From Trichosphaerium sp. ATCC 40318 (taxonomy: Eukaryota > Protista > Tubulinea), in NCBI GenBank assembly GCA_038496445.1, contig JALMLS010000438.1, forward strand, positions 62,001-126,000: DNA of 64,000 nt. The letters are read 5' to 3'. Below are positions 22,105 to 46,222 of the stretch, piece after piece. Below the pieces are notes generated by a model. The model saw only the letters and a list, made by a program, of their open reading frames with translations, was not told where the DNA came from and made no database searches. The position numbers were made by a program, and so were the translations under genes. Each line of letters begins with the position of its first letter. Position 1 is the stretch's first letter.

Positions 22105-22280
22105 ACAGGGAGTAGCTTTGATGTTAAGACAGGAAAGGAAGTTAATAAACAAAAACCCCAACAGGCGTGTATTTACGAATACATAATAGTACTTGTAGTT
22201 CTAAATAAATATTTGCACCAACTCGCCTATTATAATCAGTGCGCCAAAGTACGAATATTATGAGAATTTTGGTTAGAATC

Positions 22281-22800
22281 ACTCAAATATGCAAAGATAA
22301 CATCAAAACAAATCAACTCGGAGAACCTGCGCAAAATGTTGATGTTTGTATCTTAGTAAGATCAAGAAGAGCAACAGAAACGTTCGGTCCAACAGAAGGT
22401 AGATGGATGCAATGTTGGGTTATGCCGGAGGAATCAAACAAAAGACATCACAAATGCCAGGGTGACTCTTACAAGACATGTCACAAGAAAGGTGCTAATG
22501 AGAGGCCGACCGACACCATGGAATGAACGGTTAATTCCTGCTGAGTGCGCTGAAGCAGCTAACCGTGATCCGGAATGCTCAGACCATATTTACACTTCCG
22601 ATGTTACTTCAATCACACAAATCACAGAACGCAGTACTTTGTTATTGTGTTACAAAGCGGGCTTGTTGTAGAGGATGTAGAACACCTGGTAACAAGGCAA
22701 ATCTTTGGAGCGTATGGGACCTTGTTTGTGGTACAAGCTAGAGAAGTAACAAAGCCCATATGTTGTTGTAATCATTACAATGAAATAAATCACTTTTCAT
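22281..22800 (+). pseudogene. Truncated, internally deleted duplicate of the 3' end of the gene at 39460-42586
   Basis: High nucleotide identity of ~22282-22396 to ~41836-41948 and of ~22428-22793 to ~42267-42648, including the stop codon and 3' UTR. Frameshifted. Confidence 0.93.
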
Positions 22801-22939
22801 CAGTCTACCGCCCTTGCTGTACACATTTGCATGAATGTGGTGCAATTAAAGCAAGTGATAATGATGTTTTATGGTATTTGTTGTACGTTTGGGGTGTTTT
22901 GTTTTGTTGCTTTTACTACCCGTTTGTAGCACTGTTGGT

Positions 22940-23140
22940 GAACAGTGTTACAAGCATCAACACCCCAGAATTTCATTGTTTGAAGATTGCCAACACAGTA
23001 GGAAAGAAGTAGAGGACAAGCCTATGTTACGATGCGAGTACTGTGATGTATGGTATCACTCTGAATGCCTTGATTAGTACAAATACATGGAAGAAAAAGT
23101 AAGGCAGAGTGGTGCTTTGATTTGTCAAGAACTATACAAA
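22940..23140 (+). pseudogene. PHD-finger remnant
   Basis: KPMLRCEYCDVWYHSECLD* followed in frame by ..GALICQEL; in-frame stop and degenerate terminal CxxC. Confidence 0.5.
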
Positions 23141-39459: not shown

Positions 39460-42400
39460 ATGCGTTGTGTTGTTTTTCTATTGGTATCAATAGCGCTAGT
39501 AGCCTATGTCAATGGCGCTTCGAGGCCTACTGCATCTGTACCTAACTGCGATGCTTCTTCTCCTGAGTGGGGATGTCCTCCTGGTGATTACAGAGTATTC
39601 AGAAATGGTAGAGTCGACAGACTTACCTGCAACAAAAGACCTGAACCTCGCATGTCGTGGGCAACAAAAGTAGTTCGCTCAAACGCTTATACAGTATGGG
39701 CTGGACCTGAAGATAGCAAGCTCGCGCAGTACATACCGGAGACAGTCATGGATATTTCTATTCGTGTAAACAACTATGCCTTCAAGTACCGCGGTATTCT
39801 GATCTATGCTGAAGACTCTAAGAAGAACAGAGTCGGAGAGTGGCTTCTACCAAATGAAAAAAATCGCACGTGCACTTTTTTTTTTGGCTTCGTTTTGTTG
39901 TTGTGTTCGAAGTCCCATTCTGATTTTTATAATAGCGCTCTTTCAACTTCCATGGCCTAATAGCCACAGCTGTCGACAGAGTTTAACCCACAACACTGCA
40001 GAAGTAAAGCCTTTAAAGTCTACTTGGAAATGGAAGGCTCCTAAACGTGGCACTGGAACTGTTACTTTCCATGCGTTGATCAAAGAAGGTGATGCCAATA
40101 CTGGTGCTTTCTACTGGCCAAACGGAAATGCTGGCCCTCTTAAACTCACTCAATCTGCAAGGAACAAGCCAGTACAAACATGGTATCAGAGCAAGGCACG
40201 TTGTACTTTTTTGGTGTTTTTTTAATAATTGCGATTTTGTCTGTTCATTTACAAGTTTACTGACTTTTTTGTTGTTTAGCGTTCACAATCTTGTACCGAA
40301 AGATGTAGAGAAGTTGATGCTAGCCTCAAGTGTGATCGTGTCCACATGGAGCGCGTTAACAGCCCAACAAGGATCGAGCAGCTCCTCCTTCCACAAGGAT
40401 TCCCTTGCAAACTTCCTTATGTCAGCGGATGCAGTAATCGTGGACCTACAATGGGCACTGATGGATTATGTTACTATGATGATACCAGATGCGCAGCACA
40501 AGGACGTAATACGCAACAAGTAACTTGTGATTCAAAGACTGGCGATGCTAGAGTTGGGTATGGAGCGAACGAGTTTCTTTATATTTACGTTTCTTCACGA
40601 TTATAGTACTTACACTTTTCTTCCAGACTCAGAATGTGCAAATGTCTTCGTAACACTCTTCCTCCTGCCAATCCCGGTAGAACTGTCGTTGCTGCAAGAG
40701 GCGCAACGTCATCTGCTACAAAATCGACAGTATCTTTATTGTTCATTGCTCTCGCTGTCCTGGGCTTGACAATGCGTTCTGGTGGAAAGATTACAACTTC
40801 AATCGTATTGGCTCTCTTCCTCGTTGCTTTGGTTTCGTTCCCAACCGCCCAAGCCCATAACTGGCAATACGGTATTGGAAGAAGCGCAGATATTGCTAGC
40901 ACTCAAACACCATGTCCATCAAGAATACAGGCAGGCCCACAAGTTCAAGTTGGACCAAACCAGAAATTTCAAATCGAATGGGCTGTTGGGCACATTACTC
41001 CATCCTACTACGTCATTGTCAAGTCAACAAACGAAGACAGACTTAGAGAAGTTTCTTTCGACTCTTTGGATACATATCTGAGAGAAGCACCTAATGCTCG
41101 TTGCCAGAACTTACCTGTGTACCACAGACGTTTCAGAGCTCGTGGAGGTGACTTCAATCCTCATTCTCAGTACTACAGCGGTGAGATACCTCAAAACTCT
41201 CCTAACTTCATACCAAGACCATCTGTGTATGGTCTATGGGAAGATGGTGCCAAATTATTCGGATACAAGGACAACCTCGAAGTCAGAAATTACTGCGAAT
41301 ACGAAAACAACAAAATGCCTTTCATTGAAGGTGTATTCAAGTTTGATCATTTTGTACACAGACCACTAGATGCTGATATGGTACAACTATCTATTCCTGG
41401 TAGAGGTGGAGTCGGTGCATACACTGTTCAATGGTTATGGAGAGGTTATCGTGATTGTATTGATGTTGATTACAGACCTAATGCAGTAAGCAATATTTAC
41501 GGACTTCCAAATCCAGACGGTGGTTACACGTGCGTTTGTGTTTCTTTTTATGTTAACATTCTTGCTTTATTCTCACTTGTATGAATATTTATTCACTTTA
41601 TACTTAGCCGCGTTGATCACTGTTACTTCCCAGATCCTATAATGGTGTTCGGTAAGCCTTTTATTTATCGCAAGATTGTCCACTTAATGGTTTGAATAGA
41701 TTGCTTCAGAGTTTTCAATGATCTCAGTACTTGCGAAAGACTGTGTGATAACAGAAACGGAAATTGCGCTGGATTTACTGTCATGCCAAGAGTACTTAAG
41801 CCGAACAGATACAATCAACAAGCGAATCTATTACCTCAAATATGCAAAGATAACATCAAAACAAATCAACTCGGAGAACCTGCACAAAATGTTGATATTT
41901 GTATCGTAGTAAGACCAAGAAGAGCAACAGAAACATTCGGTCCAACAGCAGTTGTCAAACCCGGAGATCCTGCTTATCAAGCGACGTGCTATCGTAAAGG
42001 ATCAGGAAGACTCTTTGATAACTTTACTCCTGCACCACAACATCAAGACATTGCATGGAGACATGGAGATGAATGTATTTCTTGTGATTCTGTCAACTTA
42101 AACAAAAACATTACACGTATTCCTAAATGGCCGATGATAAACGACTGCAGAAACTGTGACTTGGAACCAAAGGGAAACACACCAAAGTTCAATCCTTCAT
42201 ATCTTACAAACAGAAGAAGAAATGTTTTCTGCGACGGATTCAATGGAGGCTTCGAAAATCTTCGAGAGGAATCAAACAATAGACATCACAAATGCCAGGG
42301 TGACTCTTACAAGACATGTCACAAGAAAGTGCTAATGAGAGGTCGACATGCCCCATGGAATGAACGTCTATTTCCTTCTGAGTGCGCTGAAGCAGCAAAC

Positions 42401-42586
42401 CGTGATCCAGAATGCTCAACCCAGATTTACACTTCCGATCTTCCTTCTATCACACACAAATCAGTGACAGCTGTAAATTGTTATTGTGTTACAAAGCGAG
42501 CTTGTTGTAGAGGATGTAGAACAAGAACACCAGGTAACAATGCCAGTCGTTGGAGCGTATGGGATCTTGTTCGCGGTACAAGCTAG
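39460..42586 (+). CDS. Secreted Cys-rich protein: Reeler domain + internal TM/second signal peptide + His-brace/LPMO-like domain + Cys-rich tail
   Basis: Signal peptide; Reeler motifs YRGILIYA..VGEW..C.QSLTHN..WKWKAP..GTVTFHALI. Two hydrophobic stretches end in AQA-HNW, followed by IEWAVGH and YTVQWLWRGYRDCIDV. Five introns, two of them GC-AG. Confidence 0.8.
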
Positions 42587-43435: not shown

Positions 43436-46222
43436 CTAACAAACTTTGTGTTGCCTGTTTTCATCTTTTGTTTTTTGACGTTTTTTTTGTCTCTGGTCAT
43501 CTTTTTCTGCGCTGGGTGTTTCTAGAGTCTCCTTTGGGAGTGGTCTCCTTCGTTTGCCGTTTGCATTTCGATCCTCTCGTTTACCCTCTGTACTCAGATT
43601 CGCATGTTTGCTTCCTGAAGTTTGTTTCTGGCGATTACTATTTGCACTAAAGGTACAAGCCCTAAGAAGGTCATCTACAGTAATATTCTCCGCAATAGCT
43701 TCAAGCGTTTCAATAATAGTAGTGACAGGATTTGAAGATTCTTTATCTGGACGTAGTGTATGATACCTCCATACACCATGCTTAGGATCAAAAGAAAACT
43801 CAGCAATAATAACTGTACTATTATCCTTATCAGGATAGACATCTTCTATATCAGATAATAGCATATTATGTTCATCTGGTAATAACATTACATTCCTCTT
43901 TGTAAGCGTGCCTTTATGACCTGAATGAGTGCAGATAAAATTCCATAACTGCGTGTTTTCTATTTTTTCAATTTTGAAATCCATTGTTTGTTTTTCAAGG
44001 AATTTCCATTTAAATAGGTTATTTGTAACGAAACATGAGTATGGTCCTTCGGGAGTGAATATTATTCCATCCGTTTTATGTGTTCTCGTTGCATTATCAT
44101 TAAACACAAGATTGACGAGGTCCATTTCTTTCAGTAGTAATTTGAAGTCTTTTTTTTCATAAAACTTTTTCGAGTTAGTAACAAATGGATCTTGTGGTGT
44201 TTTGTTTTGTCTTGTTTTTGTAATAATACTTTTAATGCGCCCCATACGCTCAATAAGGGGTTCATCACCTACATATTTACTGCGGTATGACATGATATCA
44301 AAGACGAGAAATTGTGGCATCTTTTTTTCTCCTAAATTTCTAACTAACTCTCCATCAAGCAATGTCACTTTATTCCCGCCATCTTCACCATCAGTATCAG
44401 ATAGTATTTTTTGAAGGAAAGGGAATTTAACCTATATACATATGAGCATTGTAACTATAGAAGATCTCCAAAAAAAGAAGAAAATAAGAAGAAAAAAAAA
44501 AGGTACTACGTACTTCATAGACATTGAACTTTCTTGTAATTAAATAAACGCCTTTAGAGAATATGAGAAGGAAGAAACGCTCTCCATCTGTTTTCTCAGA
44601 TACACGATATTGCCCATATCGTATTGTACGTAACGCTGCTTTACCGAATGATACAGGCATAGAACCCTAAATCCATCATTAATTCAAAAGAGAGAAGCCT
44701 CGAAAAGTATAGCCTTGAAACACTAGTTTGATGGAAATTGTTCGTGCTTTAAGTACAAGGCAATGTAGTAAAAGATAATAAAAATAATGACGTACAGGAA
44801 AACGCTTAATGCTACCATAAACCCTTTCTGGAAAACAATCAAGACATGCCTTTATAGCATGCTAAAAACAAAACCATGTTTAGAATATAAGTAGATCTTA
44901 ATCATCGAAGATAATAGAGTCACAACAACGTACTTTGGCAACACTTGAGATCTTCTTTAGTTCTTTTGTATTAATAAGTGTATTTACGAGACTTTTTTCT
45001 CTTTGTACTGTATTGATTGTACGCTCTATCATCAGTATTATGTTGCAAGCACTTTTAAGTATATCTGTGCGTTTCTTCTTGTTATGGATATCTTTAACTC
45101 GTGAAAGCAATTCAATCTCTACTTCGTAGCTACGAATAGGGCGTTCTATACGCGGATAATATGCACTGACTTGAGTGATATCAATACGCCAGTAGGGCCT
45201 GTGAGGGTCACTGAACTCCCATCGTCTCTAAATAATTAAGTGATGATATAAATACATCAACGCTACTCTGTAGTATCGGTAGAGTGAATGGATAAGGTTG
45301 AGAATTTTTTACATTCTCTGAGAGAATAAAAGAAAACAATGAATATGTTTTGGCTTTTTCTGTTGTACCTTTCCTCTCTTTAGAGACCAATTGTTTGGAA
45401 TAGCCTCAGTGTATTCTGTCTCTTTTGTTTCAGTACATGACGAGCACCTATAGTAGAATTAGTCAATACTAGAGCTAAAACAGCAAAAACAGAGATACGA
45501 AATTGGAACTGTTCCAAATTTGAAAACTCTTGACATACCGCCATGTGTACTTATCGTGATTAAGGTTTACATTACCACTTCGTTTTTTGGTGATCTTAAA
45601 AGTACCTCCTGTCGTCGCATCAACAGTTATACGATCCTTTCCATACGTCTGCGCGAAAAAAGGTTAAAAAAAGCCAATACAGCGTTTCAGTCGCTCGGGT
45701 AGCGGTTTAGTAATAAAAGCAGCCTGAATACGCTAAAATCAATCTCAAAAACTGAAAACGGAGCTTGAGCTTCTCGGCAGTAAACTTATACTGTAACAGT
45801 GCCCGGGCGTAGGATAAGCCGTACGTTCGTATCAAAGTAATAATCAACAGTTTCACTCTGTTTCCCTCGAAAACGTCTCGAAAGGTGGTATACAAGGTAT
45901 TGAAACTTCCTTTTCGATAATCCAGGCAAGTAATGCCCATCTACCGTTCTTCCCAACCGAATTTCTATCTCAGCGGGTGCATTGGCTATCAGTGATGTTA
46001 CAGATACGTTGATTAAACTACTAACAAACGCAGTACCATTTTCTCTGCCGTGTGTTTTCAAAAACTTCTCAAGGTCAATGTAGAGGTCCGCAGACGCGTC
46101 TTTTTTGGCTTGTCTGGTACAACAATAAGCACAAACCTTAAAAAAAAACATAACTCTGCTTGAGCCTTTTGTTTAGCTATTAAATCGCTAAGAACGGATA
46201 TACGCGGAGCAGGTGCTGCCAT
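43436..46222 (-). CDS. Bifunctional mRNA capping enzyme: TTM/CYTH RNA triphosphatase + guanylyltransferase + OB fold
   Basis: TTM motifs EIEIRLG and YEVEIEL; GTase motifs SEKTDG (KxDG), LLDGELV, FLVFDI, TDGIIFTP, FKWK and RPDK..SN; basic C-terminal tail. Confidence 0.92.

Follow-up and report, generated by a model that had tools for sequence, protein, structure and literature searches.

All known lytic polysaccharide monooxygenases (LPMOs) and the related classes of histidine-brace proteins carry an N-terminal signal peptide, the removal of which "demasks" the copper-binding amino terminus (reviewed in PMC10952591). As long as the signal peptide is present, the brace is unable to bind Cu (Walton et al., PMC10952591). 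Here, we discuss a gene of the protist Trichosphaerium sp. ATCC 40318 (Tubulinea), which is located at positions 39460-42586 on the forward (+) strand of the window, i.e., the whole stretch of 64,000 nucleotides that was analyzed (contig JALMLS010000438.1, positions 62,001-126,000). It encodes a 917-residue precursor, in the middle of which a signal-peptide-like segment directly precedes a domain, called the HNW domain, with a predicted LPMO-like fold. The HNW family would be an exception to the N-terminal signal rule in position, not in principle.

Two known systems resemble this arrangement. One is found in viral glycoprotein polyproteins (flavivirus, pestivirus, bunyavirus GPC), where host signal peptidase cuts at the lumenal end of an internal signal located behind a stop-transfer segment, so that two ectodomain proteins are obtained from one open reading frame (ORF). 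The HNW fusion differs from these in belonging to a cellular gene family of free-living protists and in that the proposed cut would also create a metal-binding amino terminus. The second system is a chimera of decay-accelerating factor and human growth hormone (DAF-hGH), in which a glycosylphosphatidylinositol (GPI)-type signal, consisting of a small-residue site and a short hydrophobic stretch, was placed in mid-protein before a second lumenal domain. Such an internal GPI signal is still processed to a GPI anchor, even with a signal peptide as its hydrophobic part (Caras 1991, PMC2288913). Whereas the chimera is an artificial construct, the arrangement in the window is natural and conserved; GPI addition may occur there.

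The precursor successively contains an N-terminal signal peptide, a divergent Reeler domain, a Cys-rich domain, a Ser/Ala-rich linker, a first hydrophobic segment (h1), a basic loop, a second hydrophobic segment (h2) ending in AQA, His384 at the start of the LPMO-like β-sandwich, and PAN/apple-like modules. We consider it likely, judging from the predicted protein and its relatives, that it is produced from one mRNA as a secretory precursor, which would be cut in the endoplasmic reticulum (ER) by signal peptidase into two proteins. The N-terminal signal peptide would start translocation, h1 would stop it while the loop with its Arg and Lys remains in the cytosol, and h2, acting as an internal signal, would restart it. 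On the lumenal side, cleavage by signal peptidase behind AQA would liberate the α-amino group of His384, which could form a copper histidine brace with His429. The first product, consisting of the Reeler and Cys-rich domains, would be held in the membrane by the h1-loop-h2 hairpin, or by a GPI anchor if GPI transamidase acts on the omega-like linker. The second product, consisting of the His-brace domain and the PAN/apple-like binding modules, would be secreted in a 1:1 ratio with the first. The features around the predicted cut are the following.

40646..40729, + strand: linker rich in Pro, Ala, Ser, and Thr (residues 314-341), reminiscent of a GPI-signal omega region; Ser is 2.4-fold enriched in the 15 residues before h1 (81 proteins).
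40730..40768, + strand: h1, a 13-residue hydrophobic segment, VSLLFIALAVLGL, read as a stop-transfer or GPI-tail-like segment.
40769..40789, + strand: basic loop TMRSGGK, predicted to be cytosolic from the charge and length of the loop in the family; it holds Met356 (ATG at 40772).
40790..40855, + strand: h2, a signal-peptide-like segment, ITTSIVLALFLVALVSFPTAQA, ending in A-Q-A at positions -3 to -1, as assessed by the (-3,-1) rule.
40856..41529, + strand: HNW domain, predicted LPMO-like β-sandwich, with His1 at 40856, His46 at 40991, Tyr74 at 41075, and W195 and Y198 at 41438-41449, as judged from HMMER relatives, conservation, an AlphaFold2 model, and VIA-align.

With intron 3 spliced out, the frame is free of stops from the Cys-rich part through a C-x-C motif, the linker, h1, TMRSGGK, and h2 to HNW. 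This frame had been proposed in an earlier analysis of the DNA without database searches (the sequence-only reading), and both the frame and the in-frame GT..AG intron at 40558-40626 proved correct. The same holds for the landmarks given there, all of which were confirmed by direct reading: the His codon CAT at 40856, the His of IEWAVGH at 40991, YTVQWLWRGYRDCIDV at 41411-41458, and the ATG at 40772. His384, the His1 of the HNW domain, directly follows AQA and would be the first mature residue if the cut predicted in silico occurs; H46 of the domain is His429 of the precursor.

An exhaustive HMMER search with the 224-residue HNW domain as the query yielded 339 relatives at E<=1e-3, 168 of which at E<=1e-10. 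In most of the best matches, the residue aligned with His1 is internal, at positions ~200-900. Among 124 HNW-containing homologues, 87 have an internal HNW, and in the remaining 37, it lies no more than 45 residues from the start. The region upstream of an internal HNW is always built in the same way: a Cys motif, a Ser-rich linker, a hydrophobic stretch, a short basic loop, a second hydrophobic stretch, and a small-x-small motif. Two hydrophobic segments, h1 and h2, are discernible in 79 of the 87 internal homologues. Over 81 junctions, including that of the window, the median lengths are 14 uncharged residues for h1, seven residues for the loop, and 15 uncharged residues for h2, and the net charge of the loop is positive in 76 cases. 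Thus, the design of the hairpin is shown, by comparison of the sequences, to be conserved in about 80 divergent protist protein clusters, as is the HNW that follows it. The hairpin is flanked by Cys-rich domains on both sides, as expected for the stop-transfer segment, basic loop, and internal signal of a polyprotein that is processed by signal peptidase.

The (-3,-1) rule is obeyed at all 88 internal sites that were scored (87 homologues and the window), with A at position -1 in 72, S in eight, and G in eight of them. As a control, 2873 other His residues in the same proteins were considered; 17% of these obey the rule, and 1.5% are also preceded by a hydrophobic run of at least 10 residues. 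By this measure, a cleavage-type site before HNW is present far beyond chance. Sites at the N terminus in the family behave similarly: 30 of 32 obey the rule, and the pattern at position -1 in these stand-alone signal peptides is the same as that at the internal sites.

In the stand-alone relatives, 33 of 37 of which begin with Met, an ordinary N-terminal signal peptide ends directly before HNW; one example comes from the acantharian Phyllostaurus. The fused and stand-alone forms do not segregate on a maximum-likelihood tree of 84 domains but alternate with each other; the domain therefore works as the N terminus of a secreted protein. Parsimony on this tree requires 14 changes, and at least six switches are forced by well-supported branches. 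As far as the sequences tell, the fused form is one that has been gained or lost repeatedly, and the cleavage-type site has always been kept.

These data also bear on the question whether the hairpin is cut at all. If left uncleaved, it would create a two-pass membrane protein that exposes its Reeler and HNW parts side by side outside the cell, and the conserved His would be a metal or ligand residue without need of a free amino terminus. Two hydrophobic segments and a basic loop also fit a stable helical hairpin anchor, and the encoding of both halves in one chain would make sense if they are to stay together. However, an uncleaved anchor has no reason to conserve small residues at positions -1 and -3, which are found at every internal site, and in the stand-alone relatives, removal of the N-terminal signal peptide leaves this very His at the start of the mature protein. 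Furthermore, both segments of the hairpin are short, and His1 is structurally aligned onto the N-terminal His of LPMOs (see below). An uncleaved hairpin is, thus, unlikely.

Another option is that the downstream protein is made separately, either through an internal promoter or through translation that starts at Met356, in which case h2 would be an ordinary N-terminal signal peptide and the fusion incidental. The sequence-only reading had mentioned such a second start as an alternative mechanism. Indeed, an ATG is present in the loop of the window protein, shortly before h2, and stand-alone HNW proteins exist, interleaved with the fused ones in the tree. Also, in the public annotation of Amorphochlora amoebiformis (locus L002, GCA_054601695.1; 1-2392 and 5001-32292), the start of the HNW gene was placed immediately ahead of h1, and a Reeler gene was annotated separately, directly upstream on the same strand; the two models may be parts of one precursor gene. 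However, as just seven of 79 loops in the family contain a Met, the family cannot depend on internal initiation, which is therefore not its route to the downstream protein. Moreover, none of the fused homologues has a stop between the two halves, and complete single-ORF transcripts are found in several species. A start at the ATG at 40772 is possible as an extra route in the window gene, but separate synthesis as the explanation of the arrangement is quite improbable.

The two His residues that would form a histidine brace are strictly conserved in the HNW domain. Across 84 divergent domains, H1, W3, R9, H46, and Y74 show no variation, and N2, D144, Y149, W195, G197, Y198, D200, and D203 are conserved in at least 90% of them. 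The conservation of the His residues assumed in the sequence-only reading is thereby borne out. AlphaFold2 models the domain as a β-sandwich with a mean predicted local distance difference test (pLDDT) score of 91.6 and a predicted template modeling (pTM) score of 0.90; H46 is located in the turn between model strands 38-44 and 50-56. Candidate axial aromatic residues, selected from the alignment, are Y198 on the last strand pair and the invariant Y74.

When the model was compared by VIA-align with 48,161 representatives of the PDB, LaX325 came first (Z 7.6-7.7) and the AA15 LPMO TdAA15A second (Z 7.4, root-mean-square deviation (rmsd) 2.6), followed by AA13 (Z 6.1) and by AA9, AA10, AA16, and AA11 at Z values of about 5-6.2. 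About half of the top 50 rows are His-brace proteins, with LaX325 and seven LPMO families prevailing among the matches, and a second-look run agrees. Residue 1 of the model always falls on mature residue 1 of the matched His-brace chains, e.g., on residue 28 of CBP21. The nearest neighbors of the domain according to a protein language model are an LPMO_10 cluster and a "polysaccharide monooxygenase" cluster, which is to be taken as a lead only. Together, the model and its structural matches support the prediction that the HNW domain adopts an LPMO-like His-brace fold, in which His1 and His46 would constitute a putative copper-binding brace.

The HNW domain is predicted to share with the catalytic LPMOs of families AA15 (TdAA15A, 5msz), AA10 (CBP21, 2bem), AA11, AA13, AA9, and AA16 the Ig-like β-sandwich, a His at its very start, an invariant second His, a near-invariant aromatic residue (Y198) on the last strand pair, and appended modules of the binding type. 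It differs from them in that it falls by sequence in no LPMO family of Pfam or CAZy and starts at residue 384 instead of after an N-terminal signal peptide. The sequence-only reading had seen a motif common to AA10, AA11, and AA15 in the C-terminal strand pair (QWxW...YxxCxDV). This proposal was not substantiated by any of the sequence searches, i.e., a profile search of the PDB, a phmmer search of the strand pair against the PDB, which gave chance matches, and a Pfam search at E<=5.

Behind the HNW domain, the protein continues with Cys-rich modules. AlphaFold2 modeled the C-terminal 294 residues with moderate confidence (pLDDT 72.7). In a wide VIA-align search with the last 133 residues, PAN, apple, MANEC, or WSC structures constituted most of the top 25; the best Z was 6.5, and 35 of the 48,161 chains reached Z>=2. 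The module concerned is located as follows.

42185..42583, + strand: PAN/apple/WSC-like module (residues 162-294 of the exon 6 translation), from the AlphaFold2 model and VIA-align wide.

Pfam gives no match for this module, and Foldseek shows the same families without reaching significance. Neither the window protein nor 17 homologues have a hydrophobic tail at the C terminus, where they end in Cys-rich modules; the downstream product should therefore be soluble. In most homologues, the final module is of a DPxC...GPPC type. No trace of this module is found within 1 kb downstream of 42586, where the window protein ends with ...WSVWDLVRGTS, and the gene probably ends there.

Processing could occur as proposed and yet yield an X325/Bim1-type protein for copper binding, trafficking, or redox relay rather than an enzyme that cleaves polysaccharides. 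LaX325/Bim1 (PDB 6ibh/6ibi; DUF6595) is the best structural match, with 127 of 150 residues aligned at an rmsd of 3.7-3.8 and residue 1 on residue 1. Like the HNW protein, X325/Bim1 is a eukaryotic surface or secreted protein with an N-terminal His and a second His close to it in the sequence, which in the HNW domain is just 45 residues away. Reeler domains are also found in metal-reductase-type proteins, FRRS1/SDR2, which would fit a role in copper handling. Furthermore, the near-invariant D144, D200, and D203 could provide a fourth ligand as in X325 (PMC10952591). On the other hand, X325 is a fungal protein with an N-terminal signal peptide, a C-terminal GPI anchor of its own, and no binding modules, whereas the HNW product has an internal signal, no hydrophobic tail or other C-terminal anchor, and PAN/apple/WSC-like modules, much as catalytic LPMOs carry carbohydrate-binding modules. 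Also, no sequence or Pfam match, including to DUF6595, connects the two. We give the copper handler a substantial chance, somewhat short of even. As the HNW product carries modules of the binding type and no anchor, we lean slightly toward the prediction that it is an oxidative enzyme acting on a glycan or another polymer.

The reading as one precursor depends on the gene model, which was assembled from spliced exons guided by homologues identified with tblastn. It consists of six exons (39460-39869, 39964-40195, 40280-40557, 40627-41529, 41608-41651, and 41700-42586), with one terminal stop.

39460..39869, + strand: exon 1, N-terminal signal peptide (residues 1-19, 39460-39516) and first half of the divergent Reeler domain, collinear in tblastn with, e.g., residues 5-128 of homologue P0008 (41% identity).
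39870..39963, + strand: intron 1, 94 nucleotides, GT..AG, with the donor within a CACGTG word; the frame is kept only by the acceptor at 39963 (or 39969).
39964..40195, + strand: exon 2, second half of the Reeler domain, collinear with the homologues.
40196..40279, + strand: intron 2, 84 nucleotides, inferred GC..AG, from frame arithmetic and the family spacing W-x5-(G/S)QSC (consensus of alignment A2).
40280..40557, + strand: exon 3, Cys-rich domain with conserved C220, C224, C231, C255, C263, C277, C296, and C298 (numbering of alignment A2).
40558..40626, + strand: intron 3, 69 nucleotides, GT..AG, in frame; a stop is met at ~40604 if it is retained, and the next exon encodes the C-x-C motif and the hairpin conserved in homologues.
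40627..41529, + strand: exon 4.
41530..41607, + strand: intron 4, 78 nucleotides, with the donor again within CACGTG.
41608..41651, + strand: exon 5, 44 nucleotides, from the tblastn homologues and the spliced model.
41652..41699, + strand: intron 5, 48 nucleotides, GT..AG; read-through meets a stop.
41700..42586, + strand: exon 6, Cys-rich C-terminal region and stop codon (42584-42586), without a hydrophobic tail and without the last DPxC...GPPC module of the homologues.

At intron 2, a GT..AG reading (40200/40279) was tried and rejected: with its 80 nucleotides, it leads to a frameshift and a stop. The GC donor at 40196 was chosen because the GT at 40200 breaks the frame, whereas removal of 84 nucleotides keeps it and reproduces the W-x5-(G/S)QSC spacing. 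The boundary is, thus, inferred to be GC..AG (AAG|GCACGT), the alternative being an indel in the assembly.

CACGTG occurs 34 times in the whole window, against 8-11 times expected from its composition. The word straddles the 5' splice sites of introns 1 and 4 (CAC|GTG; 39867 and 41527), and a copy with one mismatch is present at the donor of intron 2.

The spliced model aligns over residues 4-913 with homologue P0001 in a single high-scoring segment pair (E 1e-134), and similar results were obtained with nine other homologues of 920-1020 residues. N-terminal signal peptides matching that of the window protein are found in homologues. The closest full-length relatives are "complete" Trinity ORFs of the whole fusion from cultured Cavostelium apophysatum, Rhizamoeba saxonica, and Flabellula baltica, which we take to be amoebozoans; such an ORF is also available from Lapot gusevi, presumably a rhizarian. 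In a 976-residue fused homologue, the ORF occupies positions 46-2976 of a contig of 2994 nucleotides; that the contig hardly exceeds the ORF is typical of the fused homologues. In addition, homologue P0178 is encoded by an uninterrupted, intronless ORF of 1276 residues with a Pfam Reeler match on a genomic contig of 182 kb. Because the model is collinear from end to end with homologues, including the complete Trinity ORFs and the intronless genomic ORF, this comparison indicates that the window contains at 39460-42586 one gene with one ORF, and not two genes.

The contrary view, i.e., that two adjacent genes were joined by a wrong splice, would have intron 3 retained, the Reeler gene ending near 40604, and the HNW gene starting at 40772. 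The unspliced reading does meet a stop. However, the segment at 40627-40771 encodes the C-x-C motif, the linker, and h1, the order of which is that of the intronless homologous ORFs and transcripts, and the single segment pair of the spliced model extends over 910 residues. Two genes are, therefore, hardly credible, and the unity of the gene assumed in the sequence-only reading stands.

A degraded partial copy of the C-terminal region of the gene is found ~17 kb upstream, at 22239-22741 (+), with ~68% identity over residues 831-917, 87% over residues 667-705, and 95% over residues 812-832. The copy is spread over three reading frames and lacks an internal part, and the similarity extends into the 3' flank; by its sequence, it looks like a pseudogene fragment. 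On the other side, the HNW gene converges with an exon of an mRNA capping enzyme gene at 43436-44368 (-) (Pfam mRNA_cap_enzyme, E 6.7e-16; mRNA_cap_C, E 2.9e-8), which leaves ~850 nucleotides for both 3' ends.

The N-terminal half of the precursor was recognized as a Reeler protein by homology. When the single exons over which it is split in the window were searched against Pfam, no Reeler domain was detected. However, 11 of 31 N-terminal regions of collinear homologues match Pfam Reeler PF02014, with a best E of 1.3e-10; for example, homologue P0003 does so with an E of 9.5e-9 and 36.3 bits, where the cut-off is 21. By homology to these regions, the window half holds as a divergent Reeler domain, as the sequence-only reading had it, and it differs from known Reeler proteins in having diverged so strongly that its exons score nothing. 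In the Cys-rich domain that follows, a weak similarity to the C-terminal 85 positions of the Pfam Glyco_transf_18 profile is seen in four of the 31 N-terminal regions (e.g., at residues 213-298 of homologue P0008), with a best E of 7.8e-5, below the cut-off. This similarity may reflect a shared Cys-rich module.

Several points weigh against the proposal that a His-brace protein is cut from a precursor. The cleavage call is based on the (-3,-1) rule and on counts of hydrophobicity, and 13-14 uncharged residues, as in h1, are few for a helix that spans the membrane, which makes a true stop-transfer step uncertain. As for the gene model, a non-canonical GC donor is needed for intron 2, and both the model and the reading as one mRNA at the window locus are founded on sequence comparison. 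As for the fold, the AlphaFold2 β-sandwich and the VIA-align matches to His-brace proteins agree with what the sequence-only reading had foreseen, but the Z values of up to 7.7 remain below 8 and are "middling" on VIA-align's own scale, and neither Foldseek against the PDB nor an Atlas shape search gave a significant match for the HNW model. Searches with the exons and with a PDB profile of alignment A1 revealed no Pfam, NCBIfam, or PDB sequence match to any His-brace family, and Pfam at E<=5 gave no usable family for all 84 HNW domains, with one weak AA9 match (E 0.0055) among the 84. Finally, the best single structural match, X325, is a non-enzymatic copper protein. All in silico tests named in the sequence-only reading as able to refute it that could be run were run, and none of them refuted it; the interpretation given there is, thus, supported.

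If the cleaved precursor is nevertheless accepted, the fate of the upstream product deserves attention. A GPI attachment signal consists of a site of small residues, a short polar spacer, and 12-20 hydrophobic residues. Because h1 (median length 14) is as short as the tail of a GPI signal and is preceded by a stretch rich in Ser, Ala, and Gly, with the Ser enrichment given above, this product may be GPI-anchored. GPI anchoring of the Reeler product by way of such an internal signal is speculative. In its most far-reaching form, which we think more probably wrong than right, the h1-loop-h2 region would be a natural GPI signal abutting a signal peptide, and the precursor would be cut twice in the ER, behind h2 by signal peptidase and at a Ser/Ala-rich site ahead of h1 by GPI transamidase, with the loss of a hairpin of ~40 residues. 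A GPI-anchored Reeler protein and a secreted copper His-brace protein would then make up a surface pair at a strict 1:1 ratio, in which members of a new LPMO family might, e.g., rely on the Reeler protein for docking, electrons, or metal. Among cellular polyproteins, the precursor would be the first of its kind, and its family would be a new one of the CAZy type across Amoebozoa and Rhizaria.

A short ORF elsewhere in the window, at 22871-23077 (+), probably represents an exon of a neighboring gene; at its end, it encodes the first half of a PHD finger (E 6.3e-5 with Pfam PHD, which narrowly misses the cut-off).

A literature search, for which most subscription journals were out of reach, brought up no paper on His braces preceded by an internal signal peptide, on a combination of Reeler and LPMO domains, or on LPMO-like proteins in Amoebozoa. 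We rate the His-brace/LPMO-like fold and the processing of polyproteins by signal peptidase as known, and the sequence family and its route to an N-terminal histidine as new. The family is absent from Pfam, NCBIfam, and the PDB and has hundreds of members in amoebae, rhizarians, and marine metatranscriptomes. LPMO genome surveys that are restricted to N termini will miss such genes.

If the proposal is true, His-brace chemistry is reached from mid-protein by a mechanism otherwise known mainly from viral polyproteins, and the cleavage of internal signal peptides, and perhaps also internal GPI signals, could be studied in a cellular protein that occurs in nature. As the His-brace protein would then always be made at a 1:1 ratio with a Reeler protein, the latter would be indicated as its functional partner, and the Reeler domain, which is poorly understood, would be given a role that can be tested.

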